Shown here: positions 2,446-62,400 of the stretch, in pieces
How the letters are laid out: each line of letters opens with the position of its first letter
How positions within the stretch are numbered: position 1 is the stretch's first letter
Assembly (NCBI RefSeq): GCF_006345805.1
Contig: NC_043003.1
Coordinates: 38,130,001 to 38,194,000 of the forward strand
From: Octopus sinensis
Lineage: Eukaryota
DNA length: 64,000 bases
Direction of reading: 5' to 3'
Position numbers and translations under genes: made by a program
Notes under the pieces: generated by a model
What the model saw: the letters and a program-made list of their open reading frames with translations, nothing else
Told to the model about the DNA's origin: nothing
Databases searched by the model: none

Positions 2446-3120
2446 CTAAAAATAATCAATAGCATGATCAGAGTCGCCTAGAGGTTCCTCCGTAGTACAA
2501 TTGATAACCGCTTTAAGAGTTGTGGTGAAGAGCAGGTCCAAGGCGTTGTCGCCTCTTGTTGGAGAGGTGACTACTTGTGACCAGTTTGAGTCCAGTACAA
2601 GCTCAATGAAATCGTTTGCACTCTGTGGCCAATGGAAGGTTTCCCAATTGATCTCAGGATGATTGAAGTCGCCTGCAATAAAAACATAAGTGGCTGTTTT
2701 CCTGGCAGCAGCTCGAAGGATATCGCAAAACTGTGTGTCTTGATGGTAATTTGGGGGACGATAAACAATGCCAAGCAGGAGTGTTGACATGGTCATACGT
2801 ATGTCATAGAAAAAAGCTTCTTCTCGTGATTCGTTCAAATCAGCACAAGGAATTACCGAAAAATTTGAACGAACGTAGACCATCACACCACCACCATGGC
2901 AGTTAATGCTGTCCTTGCGGAAAAGGTTGTACCCAGTAATGTTGAAAACCCCATCACAGAGTAAGGAATGTGCCCATGTTTCCGTGACTGTGATGAAGTC
3001 AGGGTCAATACTTCTGACGTAGGAGTTGAACAGATGTATTTTGTTGCATAAACTGCGAGCATTTAAGGACAACAATTTGTACCCTGCTTGCAGTTTATGA
3101 TGGTGTGTAGAGGATGGCAG
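2446..3120 (-). mobile_element. CR1/L2-like non-LTR retrotransposon ORF2, APE endonuclease domain (truncated before RT)
   Basis: APE motifs SLNARSL, TVTETW, GGGVMVYV, GIVYRPP, IAGDFNHP, PTRGDNALDLLFT, LGDSDH. Confidence 0.9.
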
Positions 3121-12089: not shown

Positions 12090-12995
12090 ATGGCTTTTGC
12101 ATATCCAAGTTTAAGAGGAATTAGTCACCGCGATATTGCCGTCTCCACTGCTACAACAGCAGATAGCATTAATTGGCTTAAGAGACATGGCCTTTTGAAT
12201 ACCCAGAAAATATGTACATCGTGTGGAGCTAGCATGAGTGAAGTAGGGAAAAAAAGTATATCTGATGAAGTAATATGGTCGTGTGGAAGGCCTTGTAGAA
12301 AATCCGTGTCAATTAGAAAAGGAACATTTTTAGAAAATAGCAAATTGAAGTGTCAACAAATCATAGATATTTTGTTTTACTGGGCCAAAGAAGATTTAGC
12401 AAAAGGAATAGGACAGGAATGTCATTTAGCAAATGTAGCCGTGACAGATTGGAGGAATTTTTGCCGCGATGTATGTGCAGAATATTATGTTGCACAGAAT
12501 ATTAAGCTGGGAGGACCCAACGGAATCGTAGAGATAGATGAAACCGCGTTTGTTAGGAGAAAATATCATGTTGGCCATCGGGTTAAAACGCAGTGGGTGT
12601 TTGGTGCTTTAGAAAGAGATACCAGAAGATGTATTTTAGTGGCAGTGGAAGATCGGACAGCGGACACTCTTTTACAGATTATACGAGAGCGTATATTGCC
12701 TGGTACAACAATAATTTCCGACCTTTGGCGTTCGTATAATACACTCAGTCAGCTAGGATACAGACATTTGACCGTGAATCATTCAATAAATTTTGTTGAT
12801 CCGGTAACATTTGCCACAACCAACCACATAGAATGTTTATGGAAACACGTAAAGACTCGAAATAGAAGAGAATGTGGAACAGCCAGAAATTTACTTCAGA
12901 CCCATCTCATCGAATTCATGTGGCGCTATGAATTTAAGGACGATATATTCGGGAAGTTGATAGAGCAAATTCGACAGCTATATCCATGTGTTTGA
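12090..12995 (+). CDS. ISXO2-like DDE transposase (Merlin), 301 aa
   Basis: N-terminal zinc ribbon CTSC...WSCGRPC; catalytic motifs VEIDET, IISDLWRSY, HLTVNHS, TNHIECLW, EFMWR; no stops. Confidence 0.95.
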   Translation: MAFAYPSLRGISHRDIAVSTATTADSINWLKRHGLLNTQKICTSCGASMSEVGKKSISDEVIWSCGRPCRKSVSIRKGTFLENSKLKCQQIIDILFYWAKEDLAKGIGQECHLANVAVTDWRNFCRDVCAEYYVAQNIKLGGPNGIVEIDETAFVRRKYHVGHRVKTQWVFGALERDTRRCILVAVEDRTADTLLQIIRERILPGTTIISDLWRSYNTLSQLGYRHLTVNHSINFVDPVTFATTNHIECLWKHVKTRNRRECGTARNLLQTHLIEFMWRYEFKDDIFGKLIEQIRQLYPCV

Positions 12996-13702: not shown

Positions 13703-15213
13703 GCAGGTGTACCCACCCCTCCACCGCTACAGGAAGTCCTAAATTTTCTCATCCTTGTTGTCTCCCATGTACACTTCAAAATCTTACGCCACCACCACCA
13801 CCTCCTTCCATAAAAGGTAGTGGTCATTCATTGCAAGATATGTTAGTGTAGCGTACGCGGTTTGAACTTGAGTTTTATTGTTTGTCTATGAATCCTGCCA
13901 AACGCGAGTTTTCTTTTCAGGTTCATGATGCTACTAGGGCCAATACCTCCCACTCCCTCAGGGTTGGCACCCTGAAAAGCAGATCTGGCGAGATCGTTGA
14001 ATTGCTTGAACGGAGGTGTGTCGATATATGCTGTATTCAAGAAGTGAGGTGGAGAGGAGGTTCTGCTAGGTTCCTCACAGGCAAAGGCCAGAGGTACAAG
14101 ATTTTCTGGGCTGGGAATAATGGGGTCGGAGGTGTGGGTATACTTATCGCCAAAAATTGGGTAGATAAGGTAATCGAGGTAGTCAGAGTATGTGACAGAA
14201 TACTGAAGATTAGATTAGTGCTGAAGATAGTTGTGTGCAAAAATGCCACACCCTAGCAGTTGAGGGAACCTGTGGAAGAGGTTGACCCAAGAAAACCTGG
14301 GACGAAGTGGTGAAGCACGACCTTCAAACTTTAGGTCTCACCAAGGAGATGACTAGAGACCGAGACCTATGGAAGTATGCTGTGCATGAGAAGACCTGGC
14401 AAGACTAGTGAGACCATAACCCGAGGCCTCTACCTGGTATGTAGCCAGTCGACTTATACATACCTTTCCTTTTTGGGACACAAAACTCCACTTGTGAAGA
14501 CCCGTTGAGGCAAGTGAAAATGAAAATCAAAATCAAACCAAATCAAATCAGATATCAGAAAGCAGAACCAAAATCGAAGTCGATCAACATCAATGGAAAT
14601 TGCAGCTGTGATACCAGTGCTGGTGACAAGTAAGCGAACCATCCGATCGTGGCCGTTGCCAGCACCGCCCCGACTGGCCTCCGTGCCGGTGGCAGGCAAA
14701 GATCACCATCCGTTCGTGGCCGTTGCCAGCCTCGCCTGGCCTCCGTGCCGATGGCACGTAAAAGCACCATCCGTCTGTGGCCGTTGCCAGCCTCGCCTGG
14801 CCCCTGTGCCAGTGGCACGTAGCACCATCCGTTTGGGGCCGTCGCCAGCCTCGCCTGGCCCCGTGCCGGTGGTACGTAAAAGCACCATCCGTTTGGGGCC
14901 ATTGCCAGCCTCGCCTGGCCCCCGTGCCAGTGGCACGTAAAAAGCACCATCCGATCGTGGCCGTTGCCAGCCTCGCCTGGCACGTAAAAAGCACCATCCG
15001 TCCGTGGCCGTTTGCCAGCTCCCCCCGGGACCTGTGCGGGTGGAACGTAAAAAGCACCCACTACACTCATGGAGTGGTTGGCATTAGGGAGGCCATCCAG
15101 CCGTAGAAACACTGCCAGATCAGACTGGGCCTGATGCAGCCTTCTGGCTTCACAGACCCCAGTTGAACCGTCCAACCCATGCTAGCATGGAAAGCGGATG
15201 CTAAATGATGATG
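13703..15213 (+). mobile_element. RTE LINE with a large internal deletion (5' UTR + endonuclease start joined to RT C-terminus + 3' UTR)
   Basis: TLKSRSGEIVELLERRCVDICCIQEVRWRG...GVGILI (APE), then at ~14221 EDSCVQKCHTLAVEGTCGRG*PKKTWDEVVKHDL (ORF end), 3' UTR with a ~58-bp minisatellite, (atg)n tail. Confidence 0.88.
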
Positions 15214-16239: not shown

Positions 16240-16650
16240 CCAAGTCTGAGTTCAGATCCCACTTGGGTCAACTTTGCCTTTCATTCCTCCAGTGTCGTAT
16301 CAGTCAACTACTGGGTTGGGTAAGAGTTAATGTGATTGACTAGTTCCCTCTAAAATTCCTGTCTTTGTACCAAAATTCGAAGGAATTATTATTATTTTTT
16401 ATTATAAGGCAGCGAGCTGACAGAATTGTTAGCATACCTTGTGAAATGCTTAGCAGCATTTCATCTGTCTTTATATTCTGAGTTCAAATTCTGCTGAGGT
16501 TGACTTTGCTTACATCTTTTTTGGGGTTGATAAATTAAGTACCAGTTGAGTATTAGGGTCGATCTAATCGACTAGTTGCCTCCCACAAAATTTCAGGCCT
16601 TGTGCCTTTAGTAGAATGGATTATTATTATTATTATTATTATTATTATGC
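16240..16650 (+). mobile_element. Two tRNA-derived SINE copies ending in a (TTA)n tail
   Basis: aaggcagcgagctgacagaattgttagc...ctgagttcaaattctgctgaggttgactttgc...ccttgtgcctttagtagaatggattattatta. Confidence 0.85.
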
Positions 16651-26334: not shown

Positions 26335-26732
26335 ATCTTTTACTTGTTTCAGTCATTTGACTGTGGCCATGCTGGAGCACCGCCTTTAGTCAAGCAAATC
26401 GACCCCGGGACTTACTCTTTGTAAGCCCAGTACTTATTCTATCGGTCTCTTTTGCTGAACCGCTAAGTTACGGGGACGTAAACACACCAGCATCGGTTGT
26501 CAAGCAATGCTAGGGGGACAAACACAGACACGCAAACACACACATACATATATATATATACATATATACGACAGGCTTCTTTCAGTTTCCATCTACCAAA
26601 TCCACTCACAAGGCATTGGTCGGCCCGGGGCTATAGCAGAAGACATTTGCCAAAGATGCCACGCAGTGGGACTGAACACGGAACCATGTGGCTGGTTAGC
26701 AAGCTACTTACCACACAGCCACTCCTGCGCCT
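26335..26732 (-). mobile_element. Young tRNA-derived SINE, full length
   Basis: Minus head aggcgcaggagtggctgtgtggtaagtagcttgct...ggttccgtgttcagtccc with A/B-box-like motifs; very similar to 61377-61786. Confidence 0.92.
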
Positions 26733-27187
26733 ATATATATGTATATATATATATCCTGTGTATATATATATATATATATATGTATATATGCATATATATG
26801 TTTGTATATATGTATGTATACAGGGTGTCCACAAAGTCTGGATACATGGAGTAAATAAATCATAACATAAAGAATTGAATATAAGAAATAATAATTCTTA
26901 AAATATGTGTTAATCTCATGTACCCAGACTTTGTGGACACCCTGTATATGTAGATATATGTATATATATATGTGTGTGTGTATATATATAAATATGTATA
27001 CACACACACACATGTATACATGCTCACACATGCATGAGGACATGGTCGGCCCGGGGCTATAGCAGAAGACATTGCCAAAGATGCCACGCAGTGGGACTGA
27101 ACACGGAACCATGTGGCTGGTTAGCAAGCTACTTACCACACAGCCACTCCTGCGCCTATATATATGTATATATATATATATCCTGTG

Positions 27188-27218
<31 letters not shown>

Positions 27219-27908
27219 GCATATATATGTTTGTATATATGTATGTATACAGGGTGTCCACAAAGTCTGGATACATGGAGTAAATAAATCATAACATAAA
27301 GAATTGAATATAAGAAATAATAATTTCTTAAAATATGTGTTAATCTCCATGTACCCAGACTTTGTGGACACCCTGTATATGTAGATATATGTATATATAT
27401 ATGTGTGTGTGTGTATATATATAAATATGTATACACACACACACACATGTATACATGCTCACACATGCATGAGGACATGGTCGGCCCGGGGCTATAGCAG
27501 AAGACATTTGCCAAAGATGCCACGCAGTGGGACTGAACACGGAACCATGTGGCTGGTTAGCAAGCTACTTACCACACAGCACTCCTGCGCCTATATATGA
27601 TATATATATATATCCTGTGTATATATATATATATATATATGTATATATGCATATATATGTTTGTATATATGTATGTATACAGGGTGTCCACAAAGTCTGG
27701 ATACATGGAGTAAATAAATCATAACATAAAGAATTGAATATAAGAAATAATAATTTCTTAAAATATGTGTTAATCTCCATGTACCCAGACTTTGTGGACA
27801 CCCTGTATATGTAGATATATGTATATATATATGTGTGTGTGTGTATATATATAAATATGTACACACACACACACACATGTATACATGCTCACACATGCAT
27901 GAGGACAT
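26618..27908. repeat. Three tandem copies of a ~430-bp unit (SINE head + microsatellites + MITE)
   Basis: Units start at 26618, 27044 and 27479 (ggtcggcccggggctatagcag); lengths 426, 435, 430 bp. Confidence 0.95.
26821..26944. mobile_element. Tc1/mariner-type MITE, ~125 bp (copies also at 27250-27375 and 27680-27805)
   Basis: TA|cagggtgtccacaaagtctggatacatggag ... ctccatgtacccagactttgtggacaccctg|TA; ~30-bp TIR, TA TSD. Confidence 0.92.
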
Positions 27909-27959: not shown

Positions 27960-28460
27960 GTCCATTGCATATATGTGGTTGTGTGATAAGAAGTTTGCAC
28001 CGCAACCACATGGCCCTGGGTACAGTTCCACTGTGTGTCCTTAGGCAAGCATCTACAACCATAGCTTCAGACCAACCAAAGCTTTGTGAGTGGATTTAGG
28101 AAGTGGAAACTAAAAGAAGCCAAGCCCATCTTATGAATATATAGGAGTGGCTGTGTGGTAAGTAGCTTGCTTACCAACCACATGGTTCTGGGTTCAGTCC
28201 CACTGTATGGCACCTTGGGCAAGTGTCTTCTACTATAGCCTCGGGCCAACCAAAGCCTTGTGAGTGGATTTGGTAGACAGAAACTGAAAGAAGCCTGGCA
28301 TATATATGTATATATATATATCTGTATGTGTATATGTTTGTGTGTCTGTGTTTGTCCCCCCAACATTGCTTGATAACTGATGCTGGTGTGTTTATGTCCC
28401 CATAACTTAGCAGTTCGGCAAAAGAGACCGATAGAATAAGTACTGGGCTTACAAAGAGTA
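27960..28460 (+). mobile_element. Two tRNA-derived SINE copies (one degraded, one 28143-28460)
   Basis: ggagtggctgtgtggtaagtagcttgcttaccaaccacatggttctgggttcagtcccactg head. Confidence 0.85.
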
Positions 28461-28568
28461 AGTACATTTAAATTTAAAGCAGACATATAAAAAAAACAAA
28501 CAAAAAAAACACAGTTCAGTTCCTTAAAATGTATAACCCTACAAAAAGTCAATAAAATTAATATTGAT

Positions 28569-32899: not shown

Positions 32900-34060
32900 G
32901 TATTTATATCTCTCAAATGCAGTATAGTTGCCGGGGAGGATGAAATTCAGCCCGAGATATTAAAAACTATAAATAGAGAAGTTATCCCCTGGCTAACTGG
33001 TGTATGCCAAGAGATCTGGATCTCTAGAAAGGCACCAAAGCAATGGTAATCAGAGACGGCAATGCAATTTTATTTTAAGAGGAGACAAAAGATGAACCTT
33101 TAAGCTTTGAGAAAAGCATTAGACTACTTAGTGGCAGGTCAACCAGGTAAAACAAATTTGACCTGGTGTATTCTATGTTAGGTGTCTTGAAAAATAGCTG
33201 GAGAGATATTGTCAAGCCCAAAGTGATGTCGGAACATTGTCGATCTCAAGCTAGTGCGGCATTCATCCTCGATGCTGCAGAGCTGGCCAGATCTTTACTC
33301 TATAGCAAGTCTCCGAAAGGTCATGGGAGTATTGTCAAGAGATGTACGCTTGCATTGTTGACCTTTTACAAAAATCTTCCCGCAATACAAATTTGTGCTC
33401 ATATTCTGAAATACCTCCGGGTACTAAAGTTTGGCGACGAGCCTGCTGCAGGACATGCTGTGGAGGTGTTTTTTTCCTTTTTTTTTGCATAAGTTTGCAG
33501 TCGACTGGCAACTTCTCATTACCATGAACTCCCTGTACAAATGTCCTAATGTTTTTTGATCGATTAAATTGTGCTAAGTTGAAACCTTTTAATGTAGGCG
33601 TTGGACTCAGTCAGGCGTGTATATTGTCGCTTCTCCATTTCACAAACTTTGTAAGCTGGATTGACGTGAGCAGCCGTGGTGGAAGTGATATAAAAATGGC
33701 AGATGTACAATTAATCGGCTATTTGCAGATGACATGGTACTAATGATGATGTTCTGCAGCACTCACTAAATAAGTTTGCTGTCGAGTGTTGTAAAGCAAG
33801 AACGAAAATCAGTTTTGCGAAGCCATTGATCATCTCGAGGACGCTTGCTCCGCATGCTTTGTATTTTAGTGGCGTCACACTGATGCAGGAGAAGTTTAAG
33901 TGTACCGGTATTGTTTTTTCGAGTGATGGAAGACAGGAGGTTGAATTGGATGCAAGAATTGCTAGTGCTAGTGCAATTATACACCAGTTTCAGCCCTAGT
34001 TAATAAGGGAGGTAAGCTGAAACAGCAAAACTCGCTATTTTTAATTCTGCTTTTGTGCCT
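32900..34060 (+). mobile_element. Degraded RTE reverse transcriptase
   Basis: AGEDEIQPEILK, NVGVGLSQACILS, LFADDMVL, GIVFSSDGRQEVELDARIA motifs across frameshifts. Confidence 0.85.
33099..33149 (-). pseudogene. Degraded copy of the first ~47 nt of 18S rRNA inside the RTE relic
   Basis: Minus strand tacctggttgacctgccactaagtagtctaatgcttttctcaaagcttaa versus canonical TACCTGGTTGATCCTGCCAGTAGTCATATGCTTGTCTCAAAGATTAA. Confidence 0.8.
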
Positions 34061-35229: not shown

Positions 35230-36957
35230 TTTACATAATGGCAATCAACAAAGAACCAATCCTTATCATCGTTAAGAAATTCAAATCCAGAATTTTCAAC
35301 ATCGAAGAAACATATTTCAGTTCGTAACGAGATAAATCGAGAGAGCACTTTTCCTTTCGAGAGTCACCGCACTTCTGTATGAAGTAGTAAGCACTTAAAA
35401 TCAGAATCCATAGTTTTACATAGGGATGCAAAATGTCTGCACCGTAGGGAATGCGATTTTATGTAATTCATCATTTTAACAACATTGTCCATCGTCTTCA
35501 GGAGATCATTAGGTAGAGGTTTTGACAACAAAACTTCGCGGTGAATCATGTAATCTACAACTTAATTTGTTTCTAATACATGAGCCATGAAACCCTTTCT
35601 TCGACCCTGCATGGATGGAGCGCCATCAGTGCAAACGCTAATATAAGTTTTCCCCTGCATCCCTCTCAATACGACATTTTGGTTTACCAGATTAAAGACA
35701 TCTTCTCCTGTCGTTCTTTCCTTCAATTCACAACAAAAGAAAAACTGACTTATGATTTTAGCACCTCTAATGATTCGTAGAATTGAAATTACTTGAGCTT
35801 TGTTGTTGATGTCTGTACTTTCACCGATTTGCACACAAGTTTTCGAGTTAATTTTTTGCTCCAGTGAAATGTTCGCGGAGCTAATCCCCAATGTCTCGCG
35901 AAATGTCTTGAATTTTACGAGAAATCGTGTGGGCAGATAAAGGAATGGTTTAAATTTGTTTGACAGCTCCATCAATAATCATTGTGCCAATGGCTATCTC
36001 CAAGGCTGGTAAAATAATGTTTTCGACATCAGAATGTGTTTTTTTTTTCTTTGTCAAAAGCTGGGCAATCTTGTAACTAGCGATTTGAGCTTTCTCGGGA
36101 ATTGAGTGAAATTTCTTCAGCCTTTTTGATTGAATTTTTAAATTATTTTTTAGCATCTCTAAGTATTCATTTGGTTTGTCCTTATGTTGCGGATGATTTG
36201 TTATTAAATGACGTTGAAGTTTACTGGGAACCATCGCTTCATTTGAGAGTGCTGTTAAACAAATCATACAAAAAGGAACCGAGTTGTCTTTTTCCGATAA
36301 TATAAAACCATAATTGGATGTAATTTTCTTTATATTTCGTTTTGATGAGGTGGACTTTTTATTCTGGTATTCGTCTTGTTTGCTATGACTCTCTTTCTCA
36401 TTTTTCTGAGGTCACAATAAAGATTTGTCCATGTTTAAATCTAAAACTAAAAATCAATTAAAATTAACATAAAATAATTTATGTAAATTATAAATAAATC
36501 AAAAAATTAAAACTACTAGGATTACTAAACAATTTACTTAGAGACAAACCCGGTTTAAATGCAGAAATGTAATATATTCTTTTCTACTCTAGGCACAAAG
36601 CCCGAAATTTTTTGGGGAGGGGGCCAGTCGATTAGATCGACCTCAGTACGCAACTGGTACTTAATTTATCGACCCCGAAAGGATGAAAGGCAAGGTCTAC
36701 TTCGGAGACACCATGAACTTACACTTGCATGGCTTAAGCTTTGAGACAAGCATATGACTACTGGCAGGATCAACCAGGTATATATTGTAGTAAAACTGCT
36801 GTTCGTCGTGTAACGTAATTAATTTATATTTATGCTCGAACTTTGCGAATTTCTTGAATCGTTGTTTCCCGAAAATCTCGCGAATATTTTTTCGCGGCAC
36901 CCTAGGTATCTCTTGCGGCATACCACTGTGCTGCGGCACACAGTTTGGCAGACACTG
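35230..36957 (-). mobile_element. hAT (Buster/Charlie, ZBED5/SCAND3-like) transposon relic
   Basis: CLTALSNEAMVPSKLQRHL..HP; ASYKIAQLL; ESTDI; VCTDGAPSMQG; CMIHRE-like motif; 5' TIR cagtgtctgccaaactgtgtgccgc with NNNTANNN-type flank gtgtagat (36958-36965). Confidence 0.88.
36579..36780 (-). mobile_element. Chimeric SINE: 18S rRNA 5' end (~66 nt) fused to a SINE body and tail
   Basis: Minus: TACCTGGTTGATCCTGCCAGTAGTCATATGCTTGTCTCAAAGCTTAAGCCATGCAAGTGTAAGTTC, then ccttgcctttcatcctttcggggtcgataaattaagtaccagtt...gtgcctagagtagaaaag. Confidence 0.9.
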
Positions 36958-37415
36958 GTGTAGATAGTGAAGAGCCCTATAGGTTTTGACGAATTAATTT
37001 ATATGTCGACACACAATCAGACAGTCACCGTTCCTTCTCATTTATATAACAACGCTTATAATATCAATGGGAAAAGAATGAGCATCAGAAAATCTCGTTT
37101 GACTTTTCCTATAAATCTGCGCGCTTTCATACTTATGTAAGAAAATATTATTAACGTAGTTGTTATGTGTCAGCCATGTCACGTACTTTGTTATATTACC
37201 TGTTTTCATAGTGTCTTAGTTTACTTCCATAAAGAACACACACACACACACACACACCAGTGTATACATACATGTAGAAACATATAAATACAAATACAAG
37301 TATGAGTGGATGCATGTATGTCTGTGTATATGTGTGTGCATGAATGTATGTATATATGTATACATATATATGCATATTTGATTTAACCAAAAATGCAGAA
37401 ATGACATATATATGC

Positions 37416-37840
<425 letters not shown>

Positions 37841-38084
37841 TCCGAATATATTTATATTATACGTACGTATTTATGATTGTACCTGTTTGTGTGTCTGTGC
37901 GTCAACTGCCTTAAAAAAGTAGGAAGGGTATTCTGAATAATGTACACTACATCTGAATAAAGAAGAGATGGTCATGCTTAGAATGTCTCCGATCACAGGA
38001 CTGTTCAATCAAAATGCTGAAAGATGTATGGATGTGTGTGCGTGTGTATGTGAGTGTGTGTGAGAGAGAGTGCCACTTACACAT

Positions 38085-38420
38085 ACATGAGAACTCTCAC
38101 ACACATCATCATTCATCATTGTTCGACCGTGGTCGAGGCAATGGAATTTACCATGTTGCGCCAGACTTCACGGTCCATCATAGCATTACGGAGGTCCTGT
38201 TGCTGGATGCCTGTATCCCTAGAGATTACATCAGGGTAGGAGAGTGTGCGCCCTCTGGTGTTGCGAGTAGATGGCTTCCAGAGGAGAAGAGTAGAAATTA
38301 CTTCTTTTTCAGCTCTACAACAATGTCCAGCAAACTGGACTCTCCTACCTTTCACAAGAGATGACACAGGTGGTAGTTTCCCATATATTTGCATTTTAGT
38401 TGGATGGCGCGTACATACAA
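38085..38420 (-). mobile_element. RTE-type RT C-terminal fragment
   Basis: LPPVSSLVKGRRVQFAGHCCR...RGRTLSYPDVISRDTG...AMMDREVWR*, (tga)n tail. Confidence 0.8.
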
Positions 38421-39110
38421 AAAAGATGTACACATGTATTGATGTATGTACGTATATATGACAACATACCCCTTCATTCACTCTTTCTCTCTCTTTCTCT
38501 TTTTCTCTCTCCCTCGTCCCCTCTCTCTCTTCCTCTTTTCTCTCTCCCTCTCTTCACACATGTCCATTTCATATATACGTACATACATCTTTCATGTTCT
38601 CTTCTCTTTCATTTTAAAACAAAAGTAAGTGAATAAAAAATGTATCATGTACACAACCCCCGTACCCTGAAGAACATACCCAAGGCATCTCGCCGTTATA
38701 TGGACGGCTAATAGAAAAGCATAGGTTACTGTTGTTATTTTTGAAGATTGGTTCTTTAATCTTTTTATCCCAGCAGCAGAGAAGTATTATAAGGAGAAGG
38801 GGGATTCCTTTTAAGGTTTTACAAAATAATAATTATTTGTTTGTAAGCTCAAAATATTTTTTTGTTAACCGTGTCTTATTGAAAATGCATTCATAAATAA
38901 AGTACAGCAATGGGGAGTGGCTATTAGCGATGTAAACACCACCAAATTGTACGTATTCGTAAATTTGAAATACTTTAGTTTTTCGTTTTGTTATTGTATT
39001 ACAAAATAATATTTGCATTTGTTTGTAAACTTAAAATAGGTTTTTGTTAACCATGTCTTATCGAAAATGTATTCATAAATAAAGTACAGCAATGGCTATT
39101 AGCAGTTTAG

Positions 39111-40719
39111 GCAACTAGGAAAACAAGTCCCCCACCCCCAACGACTTCCGCGATGCAACTATCATCACCATCTACAAGAAGAGAGACCGAGAGGATTGCA
39201 ACAACTATCGGGGCAACTCACTCCTGAGTATTGCAAGTAAGATCTTCGCCCGTATCCTACTCAGTCGTCTTCTCATCCTCGCGGAAGACGTCCTCCCTGA
39301 GTCCCAGTGTGATTTTCGACCCTCTCGAGACACAATCGACATGATCTTTTGTGCCTGTCAACTCCAGGAGAAGTGTCAGAAACAACAACAGTCTGAAATG
39401 TTCATCTGGGATCTAAAGAAAGCCTTTGACAAGGTCCCCCGTCCTGCAATGTAGGCCGTCCTTACCCGGTTTGGATGTCCGGAGGACTTCATTGCCCTGG
39501 TACGCTCCCTTCACGACGGTGGGTAGGATATGCCATCAAAAGGCTCTCACAGACCCGTTTCCCATCAATGGGGGTCTTAAGCAAGGATGCGTCCTGGCAT
39601 CAACCTGTTTCTCTTTGTACATGGCCGCCATGTTCAACGAAATCCCACTAGACTCGCCTTCCATGAACATGCGCTATCACTTGGATGGCGGACTCTTCAG
39701 TCTCGCACGTCTCCGTGCAAAGACGAGGACTTCCGCCATCTCAGTCCCTGAGATGCAGTATGCCGACGATAATGCCACTCCGAGCCGGACCGCAGATGGC
39801 CTACAAAGGACGGCCGAACTTTACAACGCGGCTTACAAACGTTTCGTGATGCAGGTAAACACATTAAAGACCAAGACACTGATCTAACCTGCACCAGGCC
39901 AGAACAGTTCACCCATAAACATTAGCATCAACGGCCAACCCCTAGAAATACCCTTTCGAAGACCCCCACGTATGAAAAAGACGTGGAGAACCGGATTGGG
40001 GCGGCCCACTCCACCTTCGGCCCACTCCACCTTCGGCCAACTCAGCCCACGTGTATTCTTCAATCGCGCGCTGACCATCCGGACAAAGATCATGGTCTTC
40101 CGTACCATTGTCCTGTCAACCCTACGCTTGTGAGACTTGGATGTTGTATCGCAGTGACTTCAAGTGCCTTCAACATACAATGAGACGATCACGTTACCAA
40201 CAACGAGGTTCTTCGCCGCGCCTCACTACCAAGTGTCGAAGCCACCATTCTTCGCCATCGTCTCCGCTGGGCAGGTCACATCTAGCGTATGGAGCCCTCT
40301 CGTCTCCCAAGGATCATGCTCTACGGAGAACTTTCAATCGGTACAAGACCCAGAGGAGGTCCGAAATTCCGTTTTAAACACCAGCTCAAATGGACCTTGG
40401 CTCAAGCTAACATCCAGCCATCCTCATGGAAATAGATTGCCCTGGATAGGACAGCCTGGAGGACTGCTATCCGCAATGGAGCCAGCTCCTTCGAGTAGAA
40501 CAGACAATAGAATGCGGAGGCAAAAGGCAGGAGAAGAAAGGAGCATCTTCAACATCCTCGACCTGCACCGACCATCCTGTACGATTTCTGCCCACGACTC
40601 TTTCTCCACCGACTTGGACTCCAAAGTCACTCTCAGCACGCACATCAGCCGTGGGGACTGGACGGAAACTGACGAACACAATGCTCAGATACGAGCTAGA
40701 GTCGACTACAGCACTGAGG
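39111..40719 (+). mobile_element. 5'-truncated RTE (BovB-like) LINE with a 20-bp target-site duplication
   Basis: NYRGNSLLSIASKIFARILL, DLKKAFDKV, GLKQGCVLA, QYADD motifs; TSD aatggct(a/g)ttagcagtttag at 39091-39110 and 40720-40739. Confidence 0.9.
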
Positions 40720-40834
40720 AATGGCTGTTAGCAGTTTAGACTAGGCTAGGTCAGGCCTAGACTAGCCTATAGACGAACAATACGACTTAAGTCATGTCTC
40801 CTGGAACCAGTTAACGACTTAGGGTGAGGTATAC

Positions 40835-40873
<39 letters not shown>

Positions 40874-41088
40874 CACACACATACAAATATGTATGTGTAC
40901 TTTTGAGTGTGTGCGCGCACACATATGTATATATATGTTCCTACACACAGTTTGTGTACCCACATATATACATATATATATGTACATATATACATGTGTG
41001 TGGGTATATATACACGCTCTCCTTCCCTCACTTATTCAGTCACTCACTAGCAACTAGCCAACCAGTCACACACACACACACACACACA

Positions 41089-41127
<39 letters not shown>

Positions 41128-41363
41128 TAAACCGTTAGCTAAGAGCCCATAATTTATCTTCAAAACCATAATTATGTTAATGTTTGTTAAATGCGCTTTA
41201 CGTTTCTCTTTTTTTTTCTTCTTGTTTCTTTAGCAGACGACCCATGACGCATCACACTCAATTCACATGAAATATTCATCCGCCGACATTGACCATATAC
41301 CATGATATGATATAAACCACAGAGAAATTAGAGAAGTTCCGGAATAATTGTACGAAATCTACA

Positions 41364-41673
41364 ATGAACCGTCTGAGAAAAGATTTAAAGGTAGCGAGTA
41401 TATTATCTGCTCCGGAGGAACATCGATGGAGCGCTCAGACATACACTTTGCAAGAACTAGTTTCAAAGTTTACTTTACCACGTGTGGTAATATGCGCTGC
41501 TGAATCTTGCTATCTCAATGAAATGGAATTTGAGTTCGATCTGAAGCAGCCGCTATTGATTTTTAATTTTCGTGAAATACGAAAGCTTCAGACGAAGTGT
41601 TTGGAATATAATGAATCGGAGGAAAGTTATACAGAGAATGGACCTGACGTGATAATTCCAGAGGATTATGACG
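41364..41673 (+). CDS. CABIT-domain protein (Themis/GAREM/Serrano family), coding exon 1
   Basis: WSAQTYTLQELVSKFTLPRVV...QPLLIFNFREIRK...GPDVIIPEDYD|G matches the CABIT N-terminal pattern; donor G|GTAGGA phase 1; acceptor ttctttagcAG at 41236. Confidence 0.88.
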
Positions 41674-42009
41674 GTAGGAATTAATTATTTAACAGTGGTG
41701 AATGGTGGTGGTAGTGGTTGTGGCGGCGATGACAGTTGTGGTTGTAGTTGTGATGGTAGTAGTTGAGGTGGTGGCAGTAGTGGTATTAGTATTAGTAGTA
41801 GTGCTGGTGGTGGTAGTTGTGGTGGTGGTGGTGGTGGTGGTGGTGGTAGTAATAGTAGTAGTAGTTATTGTTGAGTAACCCTGACCATCTCTGTGAGAAC
41901 AAATCTATTGAATGGAGATCAATAACCGAATGTTGAAGGAGCAGCTATACTCGGTATTGTCTGTCATTCTATGTTCAGCCATTCGTGGGTTTAACATTTT
42001 ATTACATAT

Positions 42010-43005
42010 ATTCTTTTCTACTCTTGGTACAAGGCCCGAAATTTTTTTTGGGGGGGACAGTCAATTAGATCAACCCTAGTACCCAACTGGTACTTAAATT
42101 ATCGTTCCCGAAAGGATGAAAGGCAAAGTCGAACTCGGCGGAATTTGAACTCAGAACGCAAAAACAGACGAAATACCGCTGAGCATTTTTGCCTGGCATG
42201 CTTAACGTTTCTGCTAGCTCGCCGCATATATTTTGCTACAGGTTGGATATCAGTGGACATAGTATGCAACTAGTTAGTTCTGAAAAGTGGAGACCATAAT
42301 TGTAGTGTTAGATACAGAAAAGTGAGGAGATATCACGTTGGTAGCCTAGAAGATAAACGTATTGGTTAGTTTTGTAAATCATAGATGATTTTCATTTTGA
42401 TGCAGCCTAAGAATATTGATTTCAAATTTTGGTTCAAGGCCAGTAATTTCAGGGTAGGGGATAAGTCGATTATATCGACTTATTTTATCGACTTCAAAAG
42501 GCAAAGTCAACTCCGGCAGTATTTGAACTCAGAAGGTAAGGAAGCACTCCGTCGGTTACGACGACGAGGGTTCCGGTTGATCCGAATCAACGGAACAGCC
42601 TGCTCGTGAAATTAACGTGTAAGTGGCTGAGCACTCCACAGACACATGTACCCTTAACGTAGTTCTCGGGGATATTCAGCATGACACAGAGAGTGACAAG
42701 GCCGGCCCTTTGAAATACAGGTACAACAGAAACAGGAAGTAAGAGTGAGAGAAAGTTGTGGTGAAAGAGTACAGCAGGGATCACCACCATCCCCTGCCGG
42801 AGCCTCGTGGAGCTTAGGTGTTTTTCGCTCAATAAACACTCACAACGCCCGGTCTGGGAATCGAAACCGCGATCCTATGACCGCGAGTCCGCTGCCCTAA
42901 CCACTGGGCCATTGCGCCTCCACATACTCAGAAGGTAAAGACGGAAGAAATGTCGCTAAGCATTTTCCCCGGCGTGGTAACGATTCTACTAGCTCGCCGC
43001 CTTGC
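42010..43005 (-). mobile_element. SINE cluster including a SINE (42540-42925) nested in another SINE
   Basis: 13-bp TSD ACTCAGAAGGTAA at 42527-42539 and 42926-42938; inner element has a tRNA-like minus-strand head. Confidence 0.88.
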
Positions 43006-45484: not shown

Positions 45485-46589
45485 CTAGGTTGTCGAGAAA
45501 GTTCTTGCGGTTTTTAACCTTTGAATTCAGATGCACCATATCTCGGCTCAAACGAAACTTTATTAATCGAAATAAACACCATTAGAATCAACACACTTTT
45601 GCCAATGCGAAACAAGTTTATTTATGCCAGTAGCGTAAAAATCCTGTGTTCTGGTGGCGATGAAGTCGTTGAAAGCATGTTTAGCATCGTCTTGGTTTTT
45701 GAAGCATTTCTCACGCAGGAAGTTGTCGAGGTGCTTGAAAAAGTGGTAGTCGGTAGGCGAGAGGTCTGGTGAGTATGGCGGATGAGGCAGAGTTTCGTAG
45801 CCCAATTCGTTCAACTTCTGCAGGGTCAGTTGTGCGATGTGCGGCCGAGCGTTGTCGTGGAGAAGAATTGGTCCTTTTCTATTGACCAATGCTGGCTGTT
45901 GTTGTCGGAGTTTCTTATGCATTTCATCCATCTGCTGACAGTACTTCTCCGCCTTAATGGTTTCGCTTGAATCCAAAAAAGCTGTGATGGATGAGACCGG
46001 CCGCAGACCACCAAACAGTCACCATGACCTTCTTTTGGTGCAACTTTGGCTTCGGGAAGTGGCGCGGAGCTTTGTTGGCATCCAACCACTGAGCTGAGCG
46101 TCGCCGGTTGTCGCGAAGAATCCATTTTTCGGCGCAAGTCACAATCCAGTCTAGAAACGGGTCGTTCTTGTTGCGTAAAAGAAGGGAAGACGATATTTCA
46201 AAACGGTGTATTTTTTGGTTGTCGTTCAATTCGTGCGGCATCAATTTCTCAAGTATTTCGTCACCGCTACGAAATTTCTTGAACCACCATTGTGCTGCAC
46301 GTTCATTAGTGGTTCCTGGGTCAAACGCATCGTTGATATCCCGAGCTATTTCAGCAGCTTTTCGACCTAGCTTGAGCTGGAATAAGAAAATTGTGCGAAT
46401 TTGCTTTTTGTCCATCTTGTATTCAACGTTCCGGAAAAAATGACCTAATTATTCAAAAAGAAAAAGAGTAACACGATTAAATAGAATGAAAACAGGCATT
46501 AAAATGATATATAAAGTCAAAGTAATTTAACGAAAATTAATTTGAAAATACATCATTTAAATTCCGCAAGAACTTTCTTAACAACCTAA
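45485..46589 (-). mobile_element. Mariner transposon (SETMAR/Hsmar1-like), defective, both TIRs present
   Basis: TIRs (c/t)taggttgt..agaaagttcttgcgg flanked by TA; MPHEL, LLHDNARPH, YSPDLSPTDYHFF motifs; first catalytic D replaced (TCAEKW), frameshift and internal deletion. Confidence 0.93.
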
Positions 46590-60859: not shown

Positions 60860-62400
60860 TTAAGGGAAACCGTCTGGGTAAACTATGTTTTGCATAAGCC
60901 TAGTATTGATAGAATAAATATACAAGTCATCTGCACTGCTAACTCGAGAGCGTGCGAGAAATAGTTGTCCATGAGAAAAGCAGGGTATTTGTAAATCGAG
61001 ACCCACAATTTTTGAAGTTTGACCCTGGGCTTTATTGATTGCCATAGCGAAGCATAATCGCAATGGGAACTGGAGACGCTTGAACTGAAATGACATATTT
61101 GAGTGAATAAAGGGCATGCGTGGAATGTATGCGATCGCTCCTCGATGAGCCGGCAATAATGGTTGCTTGTAGGACATGACTTGTCATTGTAATTAGAGTG
61201 AATCTTGTACCTTTGCATAGTCGTGGTGGGTCGAAATTCCCCAAAAGCATGATAGGTGTACCTTTCTTTAGGAAAAAAAACTAATGCGGTGGCAGTCTTG
61301 TAGGTTGTAGAGAGTTGAGAAATTCAGCTGCATAGTCAACAGTGACATGTTAGTGGATGACAAACGTTGAAACATCTACTCTTTTACTCTCTTTTACTTG
61401 TTTCAGTCATTTGACTGCGGCCATGCTGGAGCACCGCCTTTAGTCGAGCAAATCGACCCCGGGACTTATTCTTTGTAAGCCCAGTACTTATTCTATCGGT
61501 CTCTTTTGCCGAACCGCTAAGTGACGGGGACGTAAACACACCAGCATCGGTTGTCAAGCAATGCTAGGGAGACAAACACAAACACATACACACACACACA
61601 CACATATATATATACATATATACGACAGGCTTCTCTCAGTTTCCGTCTACCAAATCCACTCACAAGGCATTGGTCGGTCCGGGGCTATAGCAGAAGACAC
61701 TTGTCCAAGATGCCACGCAGTGGGACTGAACCCGGAACCATGTGGTTGGTTAGCAAGCTACTTACCACACAGCCATTCCCGCGCCTATTCTCCAGGTAGA
61801 ATGTGGAGTTCATGGTATACTTTATCAACGCTTTCATTCTGAGGTGCTAAAATAGCTCTCTCTGCGAACCATGCTATGTTTTTAAAGTTATCTTGCAATG
61901 TGGGAAATATCTTTTCTTGAAGCTCAGCTGTTGCAGGGTGTTATTCAACGGTAAAGTGCCATTTCTAATTAGTAGAAGTTGATGAAAGAATTCCTCAGCC
62001 AAGGGGTCGTTGTAGAGCTGAGCTCGCATAATGTAGCTTAATGAAAGCTGATGAACAAGCCTCCACAGAGGTGAAAACTTCAGACACACATTGATGTCGT
62101 CAGCTCGCGTACCCCGTGGTATGACTGGTAATATTTGATGGAAATCCCCTTTGAGGACAACAGTTAAGCTCCCCATAAAAGAAGTACTGTTTCTAATATC
62201 CCTTAGTGACCTATCTTGGGCTTCTAATGCACCACGGTGTGCCATCGTGCATTCATTCCAGACAATAAGTGTAGTTTAGAGCAGAACTTCCGCTGTCGGT
62301 GATCATTTTCAAATATTACACATTTGGGCATCGCCGAAGTGAGTTTTCTTGAGCACGAATAGAGGTAGTTTTCTTTGCGGCCCTTGTTTGTGGAGATAAA
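60860..62400 (-). mobile_element. Helitron PIF1-like helicase relic, interrupted by a SINE
   Basis: WNECTMAHRGALEA.DRSLRDI, GDFHQILPVIPRG, QFPLRLCFAMAINKAQGQT, FSHGQLFLARSRV, QNIVY motifs; frameshifts and stops. Confidence 0.92.
61377..61786 (-). mobile_element. Young full-length tRNA-derived SINE
   Basis: Nearly collinear with 26335-26732. Confidence 0.92.

Follow-up and report, generated by a model that had tools for sequence, protein, structure and literature searches.

A probable chimeric retrocopy joining the 5' end of 18S rRNA to a truncated SINE in Octopus sinensis

An element on the minus strand of Octopus sinensis DNA, at 36780-36579 of the 64-kb stretch analysed here (the window), is probably a chimeric retrocopy that arose from a single retrotransposition event (Table 1). 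Two parents are present in it in the same orientation, an 18S rRNA copy that starts at nt 1 of the RNA and a SINE that has lost its promoter region, and a direct repeat flanks the pair. Three features of chimeric retrocopies are found together: the element opens with the 5' end of the RNA itself, its 3' partner is a truncated element of the same orientation, and a single outer repeat, short and AT-rich, encloses both. The element is most likely the product of a known mechanism acting with an RNA partner that has not been reported before.

Table 1. Parts of the chimera, its flanking repeat and two related features (positions in the window; element nt counted from 36780 on the minus strand)
Feature	Position	Strand	Basis
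5' repeat copy AATATA, plus the T at 36780 (also 18S nt 1)	36781..36786	-	sequence comparison of flanks
Copy of 18S rRNA nt 1-67, from the mature 5' end	36714..36780	-	Rfam SSU_rRNA_eukarya
Junction zone TGGTGTCT, element nt 68-75	36706..36713	-	alignment to 24 SINE segments; low-confidence end of Rfam alignment
SINE body and 3' end, element nt 76-202, from CCGA of the head's last few bases to GTAGAAAAG	36579..36705	-	blastn, pairwise alignment
3' repeat copy AATATAT, directly after the last base of the SINE	36572..36578	-	sequence comparison of flanks
Comparator: full-length SINE of the same subfamily with normal head, shows what the chimera has lost	42001..42230	-	alignment
Second, older 18S 5'-end piece (piece B), nt 1 to ~50	33100..33149	-	similarity to chimera head

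Read on the minus strand, the element begins TACCTGGTTGATCCTGCCAGTAGTCATATGCTTGTCTCAAAG... (longer reading from 36780: TACCTGGTTGATCCTGCCAGTAGTCATATGCTTGTCTCAAAGCTTAAGCCATGCAAGTGTAAGTTCA), and this start is nt 1 of eukaryotic 18S rRNA. When 36690-36840 was scanned alone, it was matched by the Rfam model SSU_rRNA_eukarya over model positions 1-90 with 66.4 bits (E 4.4e-18), above the gathering score of 50 bits, and the alignment was complete at the 5' end and cut at the 3' end. A preliminary description of this DNA had placed the opening of the element at mature 18S nt 1, and the alignment from model position 1 bears out that start, with its coordinates and strand. The first 42 nt of the head contain the universal eukaryotic 18S primer sites EukA and SSU_F04, with one base mismatched (primer sequences printed in PMC6492006, for example). 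Compared with the Rfam consensus, the head shows two differences at highly conserved sites (AGAUU>AGCUU and GCAUGU>GCAAGU), which might be native octopus 18S bases; this amounts to 2 changes in ~62 nt of the conserved 18S core. Just model positions 1 to ~70 are present at the chimera, rather than a full-length (~1.8 kb) 18S gene or rDNA unit, and an Rfam gathering scan of the whole window returned nothing. When all 64 kb were scanned by E-value instead, the Rfam filters dropped the true SSU match, which is clear in the scan of the short stretch; that full scan gave 174 matches at E up to 1, and among the 150 matches listed most were spurious miRNA on (TA)n/(CA)n-type microsatellites. The sequence 5' of 18S nt 1 is unique AT-rich DNA. 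A SINE lying within a longer 18S pseudogene was ruled out, as the downstream flank alone has no SSU match and the longer Rfam alignment is an extension artefact. A structured RNA was likewise ruled out: the fold of the chimera equals that of shuffled sequences (z = 0.00).

No match to the junction zone was seen in the SINE consensus or in the conserved portion of the 18S model, and the bases of the zone may come from the 18S variable region, from the SINE or from no template. The length of ~66 nt first given for the 18S part is correct within these 8 nt, assignable to neither parent. When the segments are aligned together, GTGTAAGTTCA of the 18S part falls on GTTCTGAGTTCA, the B-box region of the SINE, so that the two parents share AGTTCA (element nt 62-67). 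SINE identity picks up again at CCGAAGTAGACC, where the consensus reads CCGAGGTCGAC. From there the SINE part spans SINE nt ~93 to the normal 3' end in the same orientation as the head, and it ends exactly as the sister SINE copies do. The SINE part (36705-36579) is 89.1% identical to an O. sinensis chromosome copy (locus L002, 18355-18225), 85.0% to 42140-42013(-) and 81.3% to 16494-16620(+); this identity of 81-89% from element nt 76 agrees with the switch, described earlier, from the head into the body and tail of the SINE of this window. Pairwise alignments, judged by eye, show ~5 private changes in the 127 nt of the SINE part. Head and SINE part have decayed to a similar level, which would fit their ageing as one unit in the genome better than it fits an assembly or read chimera, provided that octopus 18S rRNA is canonical at these sites.

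The SINE population was surveyed in the window and three further loci, two of O. sinensis (L001, L002) and one of O. bimaculoides (L003), which add 49.6 kb for a total of 113.6 kb. Twenty-five SINE-related segments were identified in this sample, ~12 of them in the window, and 13 copies are full-length; in these, the conserved block TTTGCCTTTCATCCTTTCGGGGTCGATAAATTAAGTACCAGTT comes after a head GGCGGCGAGCTGGCAGAATCGTTAGCACGCCGGGC...GTTCTGAGTTCAAATTCCGCCGAGGTCGAC. The copies near 16405, 53134 and 60250, to which a tRNA-like head had been ascribed, are by alignment full-length with the usual GGCGGCGAGCTGGCAGAA... head. No tRNA was found in the window by ARAGORN, Rfam finds none in one good SINE copy, and the 13-copy consensus gave a weak cloverleaf only, with ARAGORN at relaxed thresholds. 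The 18S head was found on none of the 24 other segments in the 113.6 kb of octopus DNA, and 18S-headed copies are a small minority of SINE copies at most in this sample. Neither flank of the chimera has another copy within the sample. A protein-database search with the junction-spanning ORFs, one per strand, returned no match; spurious ORFs such as these are absent from the database, and the result is mute on copy number. Exact look-up of 20 window ORFs, aimed at the same or an orthologous locus, found none on record. The junction pattern gave zero matches in JGI metagenomes, an uninformative result for a collection without octopus DNA, and a SINE-only control pattern gave zero in metagenomes, viral contigs and prokaryotic genomes, also collections without octopus DNA.

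No LINE sharing the 3' end of the SINE was found in the 113.6-kb sample. The window contains fragments with Pfam matches to PIF1 helicase, LINE endonuclease and reverse transcriptase (61874-62245 (-), 2446-3075 (-), 13882-14256 (+) and 39426-39887 (+)), and these are without the SINE 3' end; the PIF1-helicase fragment is possibly a Helitron remnant. Other repeats and mobile elements were identified as well. An intact ORF of 301 aa at 12090-12995 (+) encodes an ISXO2-like (PF12762) transposase, whose exact sequence is absent from the protein collection and whose best relatives are from O. sinensis (92% identity) and O. bimaculoides (81%). A mariner-like transposase frame at 45563-46415 (-) is divided by a frameshift into two ORFs (153 and 137 aa), and its DNA is 89% identical to a copy in L001. 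At 26617-27908 a 430-bp unit is repeated three times in tandem with 97% identity, and dispersed relatives of this unit (87-95% identity) lie at 28142-28463 and 61377-61791, with several more in the O. sinensis contig L001. A GC-rich minisatellite at 14667-14981 (61-bp unit, 5.2 copies, 86% matches) carries long spurious ORFs on both strands.

The chimera is without the whole A-box-bearing part of the SINE head, and of the B box only GTTCA is left. In a pattern scan of the chimera that allowed up to 2 mismatches, no B box came up; the A-box-like matches were weak, with 2 mismatches in every case. The 18S piece brings no Pol III box either, in keeping with the earlier statement that the 18S 5' end lacks a Pol III promoter, and the internal promoter that marks a SINE family is absent from the chimera. 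With the A-box segment and most of the B box gone, and no Pol III box in the 18S piece to make up for them, the chimera was most likely dead on arrival and no founder of a family.

Another 18S 5' end lies 3.6 kb from the chimera on the same strand (piece B, TACCTGGTTGACCTGCCACTAAGTAGTCTAATGCTTTTCTCAAAGCTTAAAGG). Over 51 columns it is 84% identical to element nt 1-47 (E 3e-9), it is too decayed to be matched by the Rfam SSU model, and it continues into non-SINE sequence that has no other copy in the sample. Its candidate flanking repeats, TCAAATTTGTTT / TCATCTTTTGTCT or a TTTGTTT 307 nt downstream, are both no better than chance. Piece B is possibly a tailless pseudogene or a second chimera. 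A local duplication linking the two 18S pieces was ruled out, as the 50-nt head alone is common to their neighbourhoods. The stretch between them includes a decayed run of ORFs (35231-36267 (-)) without Pfam match, which we take to resemble a hAT/ZBED-type transposase. With its different partner and breakpoint, piece B speaks for the 18S start having been captured repeatedly, by chimera or pseudogene formation, and not for a SINE family, in line with the preliminary criterion that differing breakpoints mean random chimeras. Both pieces share the unusual C of CAAAGCTTAA, which is either a native octopus 18S base or the mark of a common non-canonical source. Two insertions that start at 18S nt 1 within 3.7 kb and share CAAAGCTTAA keep a broader reading in view: the 5'-terminal ~50-75 nt of 18S rRNA may be a recurrent 5' partner in octopus retrotransposition, perhaps fed by abundant 5' rRNA fragments, and some chimeras, this one included, may have been re-mobilised as a low-copy, promoterless 18S-headed SINE lineage. 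We regard this reading as doubtful, if worth bearing in mind.

It is improbable that the chimera belongs to a propagating family of 18S-headed SINEs, whose master would be transcribed by read-through or from a Pol II or other promoter and mobilised via the SINE 3' end. Such a family would draw on an intact 3' end, as needed for recognition by a partner LINE, and on a break that falls at the boundary of the head and body modules, a known site of SINE head exchange (PMC3272025, PMC4758252); the C of CAAAGCTTAA could also mean that both 18S pieces come from a common non-rRNA source. Against it are the 0 of 24 other SINE segments with an 18S head, the different partner and breakpoint of the sole other 18S piece and the missing Pol III box. 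Furthermore, a uniform chimeric structure among copies is the published requirement for a family (PMC7245038), and none is seen here. The preliminary description had offered a one-off template-switch chimera and an 18S-headed family as alternatives; the first of these is favoured by the single outer repeat, the lack of a Pol III box, the segment count and the differing piece B, and the second is the less likely.

The flanking repeat bears on whether one or two insertions took place. AATATAT lies directly against 18S nt 1 at one end of the chimera and against the last base of the SINE at the other, and at equally constrained positions an exact 7-mer occurs at 0.4-0.55% of control positions in the window. 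Sister copies are bracketed in the same manner, with AATATAT(G) around the copy at 42230-42001, ATTATTAAAAT around the L002 copy and an ATTAT-type sequence around the copy at 16409-16624, and their repeats begin right after GTAGAAAAG or GTAGAATGG. The bases that follow the SINE end thus vary by copy and match the copy's own 5' flank, which makes them target-derived or target-matched and not a fixed tail. The AATATAT pair fits a marking of both ends of one integration that carried both parts, one end being 18S nt 1 and the other the 3' end of the SINE. It is short and AT-rich, and it also follows the sister copy at 42013; it could reflect microhomology between tail and target rather than strict duplication. 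The tatatt repeat had earlier been rated weak evidence for a target-site duplication because atatatt also occurs in the normal SINE tail: the varying bases of the sister copies answer this doubt in part, and some caution stays in place, as the pair may be a strict duplication or microhomology.

An 18S retropseudogene fragment and a 5'-truncated SINE that inserted separately and happen to abut are quite unlikely to account for the structure. SINEs are dense in this DNA (~12 segments per 64 kb) and 18S 5' pieces also stand alone, as piece B does; each event, however, would be expected to leave a repeat of its own, whereas the sole repeat brackets the pair and no repeat resembling a target-site duplication was found at the internal 18S/SINE junction. 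The two parts also share orientation with at most 8 unassigned bases between them, and the flank past the SINE is not 18S. A nested insertion with the SINE head lying further upstream was ruled out, since no head was found in 36781-42000. The chimera contrasts here with a true nested case at 42497-43000 (-), where SINE head nt 6-82 (43000-42926) is followed by ~390 nt of other sequence before the SINE resumes at nt 75 (42534-42497); the ~390-nt insert begins with a different tRNA-like SINE, and the overlap suggests a duplication of ~8 nt.

For the origin of the chimera as a single retrocopy, it is a matter of inference which enzyme acted, in what order the RNAs were copied and whether they were joined by switching or ligation. 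A LINE-encoded reverse transcriptase would have primed at the AT-rich target AATATAT and copied the SINE RNA, starting at the 3'-terminal GTAGAAAAG and reaching as far as the B-box/T-arm region. Copying would then have carried on along 18S rRNA, or along a 5'-terminal 18S fragment, from ~nt 70, with run-off at mature nt 1, and attachment of the cDNA end to the target would have involved an overlap of 1 nt. The template jump was possibly guided by the AGTTCA common to 18S and SINE. Alternatively, a 5' 18S fragment and a cleaved SINE RNA may have been ligated ahead of reverse transcription, a route that would give the same DNA product. It has been proposed that template switching underlies SINE head exchange (PMC3272025, PMC4824008, PMC4758252) and also small-RNA/LINE-1 chimeras (PMC13174262), while for U6/L1 the ligation of RNAs before retrotransposition has been demonstrated (PMC6789731). 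The position of the SINE breakpoint, in the loop-like B-box region, is compatible with both a template switch and ligation. It is very unlikely that the repair of a double-strand break took in an 18S cDNA or rDNA fragment, at the DNA level, where a truncated SINE begins: the 8 unassigned junction bases could be repair filler, but an opening at mature nt 1, two parts in one orientation and an outer repeat are predicted by target-primed reverse transcription and not by random capture. An assembly or read chimera between an rRNA read and a SINE-containing read is scarcely credible: both kinds of sequence are abundant in libraries, but the head begins exactly at mature nt 1 after unique AT-rich DNA and departs from the conserved 18S core at two sites, the direct repeat brackets the whole, and the decayed piece B nearby shows that such insertions exist in the genome.

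If it is a one-off, the chimera provides a clean invertebrate example of SINE head exchange. This step, when it involved 5S or 7SL RNA, has founded new SINE classes, and the octopus element is a snapshot of such a step. On this view the exchange failed to found a class in octopus, since Pol I transcripts carry no promoter with them. Should 18S 5' ends turn out to be recurrent partners in octopus, they would give a clue to where, and on which RNAs, cephalopod LINE reverse transcriptases act, and would mark template switching genome-wide in a lineage with massive SINE expansion.

Octopus SINEs are tRNA-derived, with OR1 and/or OR2 placed in the CORE superfamily (PMC4758252, PMC4824008). In these two sources, the tRNA-derived families OK, OR1 and OR2 are credited to Ohshima and Okada 1994, and the two disagree on whether OR1 or OR2 is the CORE-SINE. 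The 3' parent of the chimera resembles these families in being abundant, in its tRNA-type head (GGCGGCGAGCTGG...GAGTTCAAATTCC) and in its conserved central block, a match to a named family by description alone. It has been described that SINE heads derive from tRNA, 7SL, 5S, U1/U2 snRNA, the 28S 3' end, snoRNA and the LINE 5' UTR (PMC4758252, PMC7245038, PMC4494074). Our literature search found no description of 18S/SINE or 18S/LINE 5'-end chimeras or of an 18S-headed SINE, in line with the preliminary remark that such a head class was not known to be described.

Tailless retropseudogenes of cellular RNAs are known from therian mammals, where they are L1-dependent; nucleolar rRNAs are strongly under-represented among them, with two 18S cases only, both 5'-truncated (PMC5322556). 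Piece B resembles these retropseudogenes in its start at nt 1 and its internal stop, with an unconvincing flanking repeat. The chimera itself is closest in structure to the LINE-mediated, or Buzdin-type, chimeric retrocopies (PMC13174262, PMC6789731): a 5' copy of a non-coding RNA and a 3' truncated retroelement lie in the same orientation within one bracketing repeat pair. The partners of LINE-1 in such chimeras include U6, U3, 5S, tRNA and 28S RNAs, and 18S is unmentioned in the catalogue (PMC13174262). The octopus element differs in having the first ~70 nt of 18S rRNA as 5' partner and a SINE rather than a LINE as 3' partner, in its cephalopod host and in lacking a poly(A)-type tail.

The rRNA-headed SINEs offer the other comparison. 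HaSE3 consists of a 5S head on the body of HaSE1 and arose from a tRNA SINE by template switching (PMC3272025). In HaSE3, the 5S-headed Deu-SINEs and SINE28/MeloSINE with the 28S 3' end (PMC3272025, PMC4758252, PMC7245038), as in the chimera, rRNA replaces the tRNA head while the SINE body and tail are kept. HaSE3, Deu and SINE28 types are multi-copy and uniform in structure, whereas the octopus chimera is one copy in the 113.6-kb sample. Moreover, 5S heads bring their own Pol III promoter, whereas the octopus head comes from a Pol I transcript that has no internal promoter.
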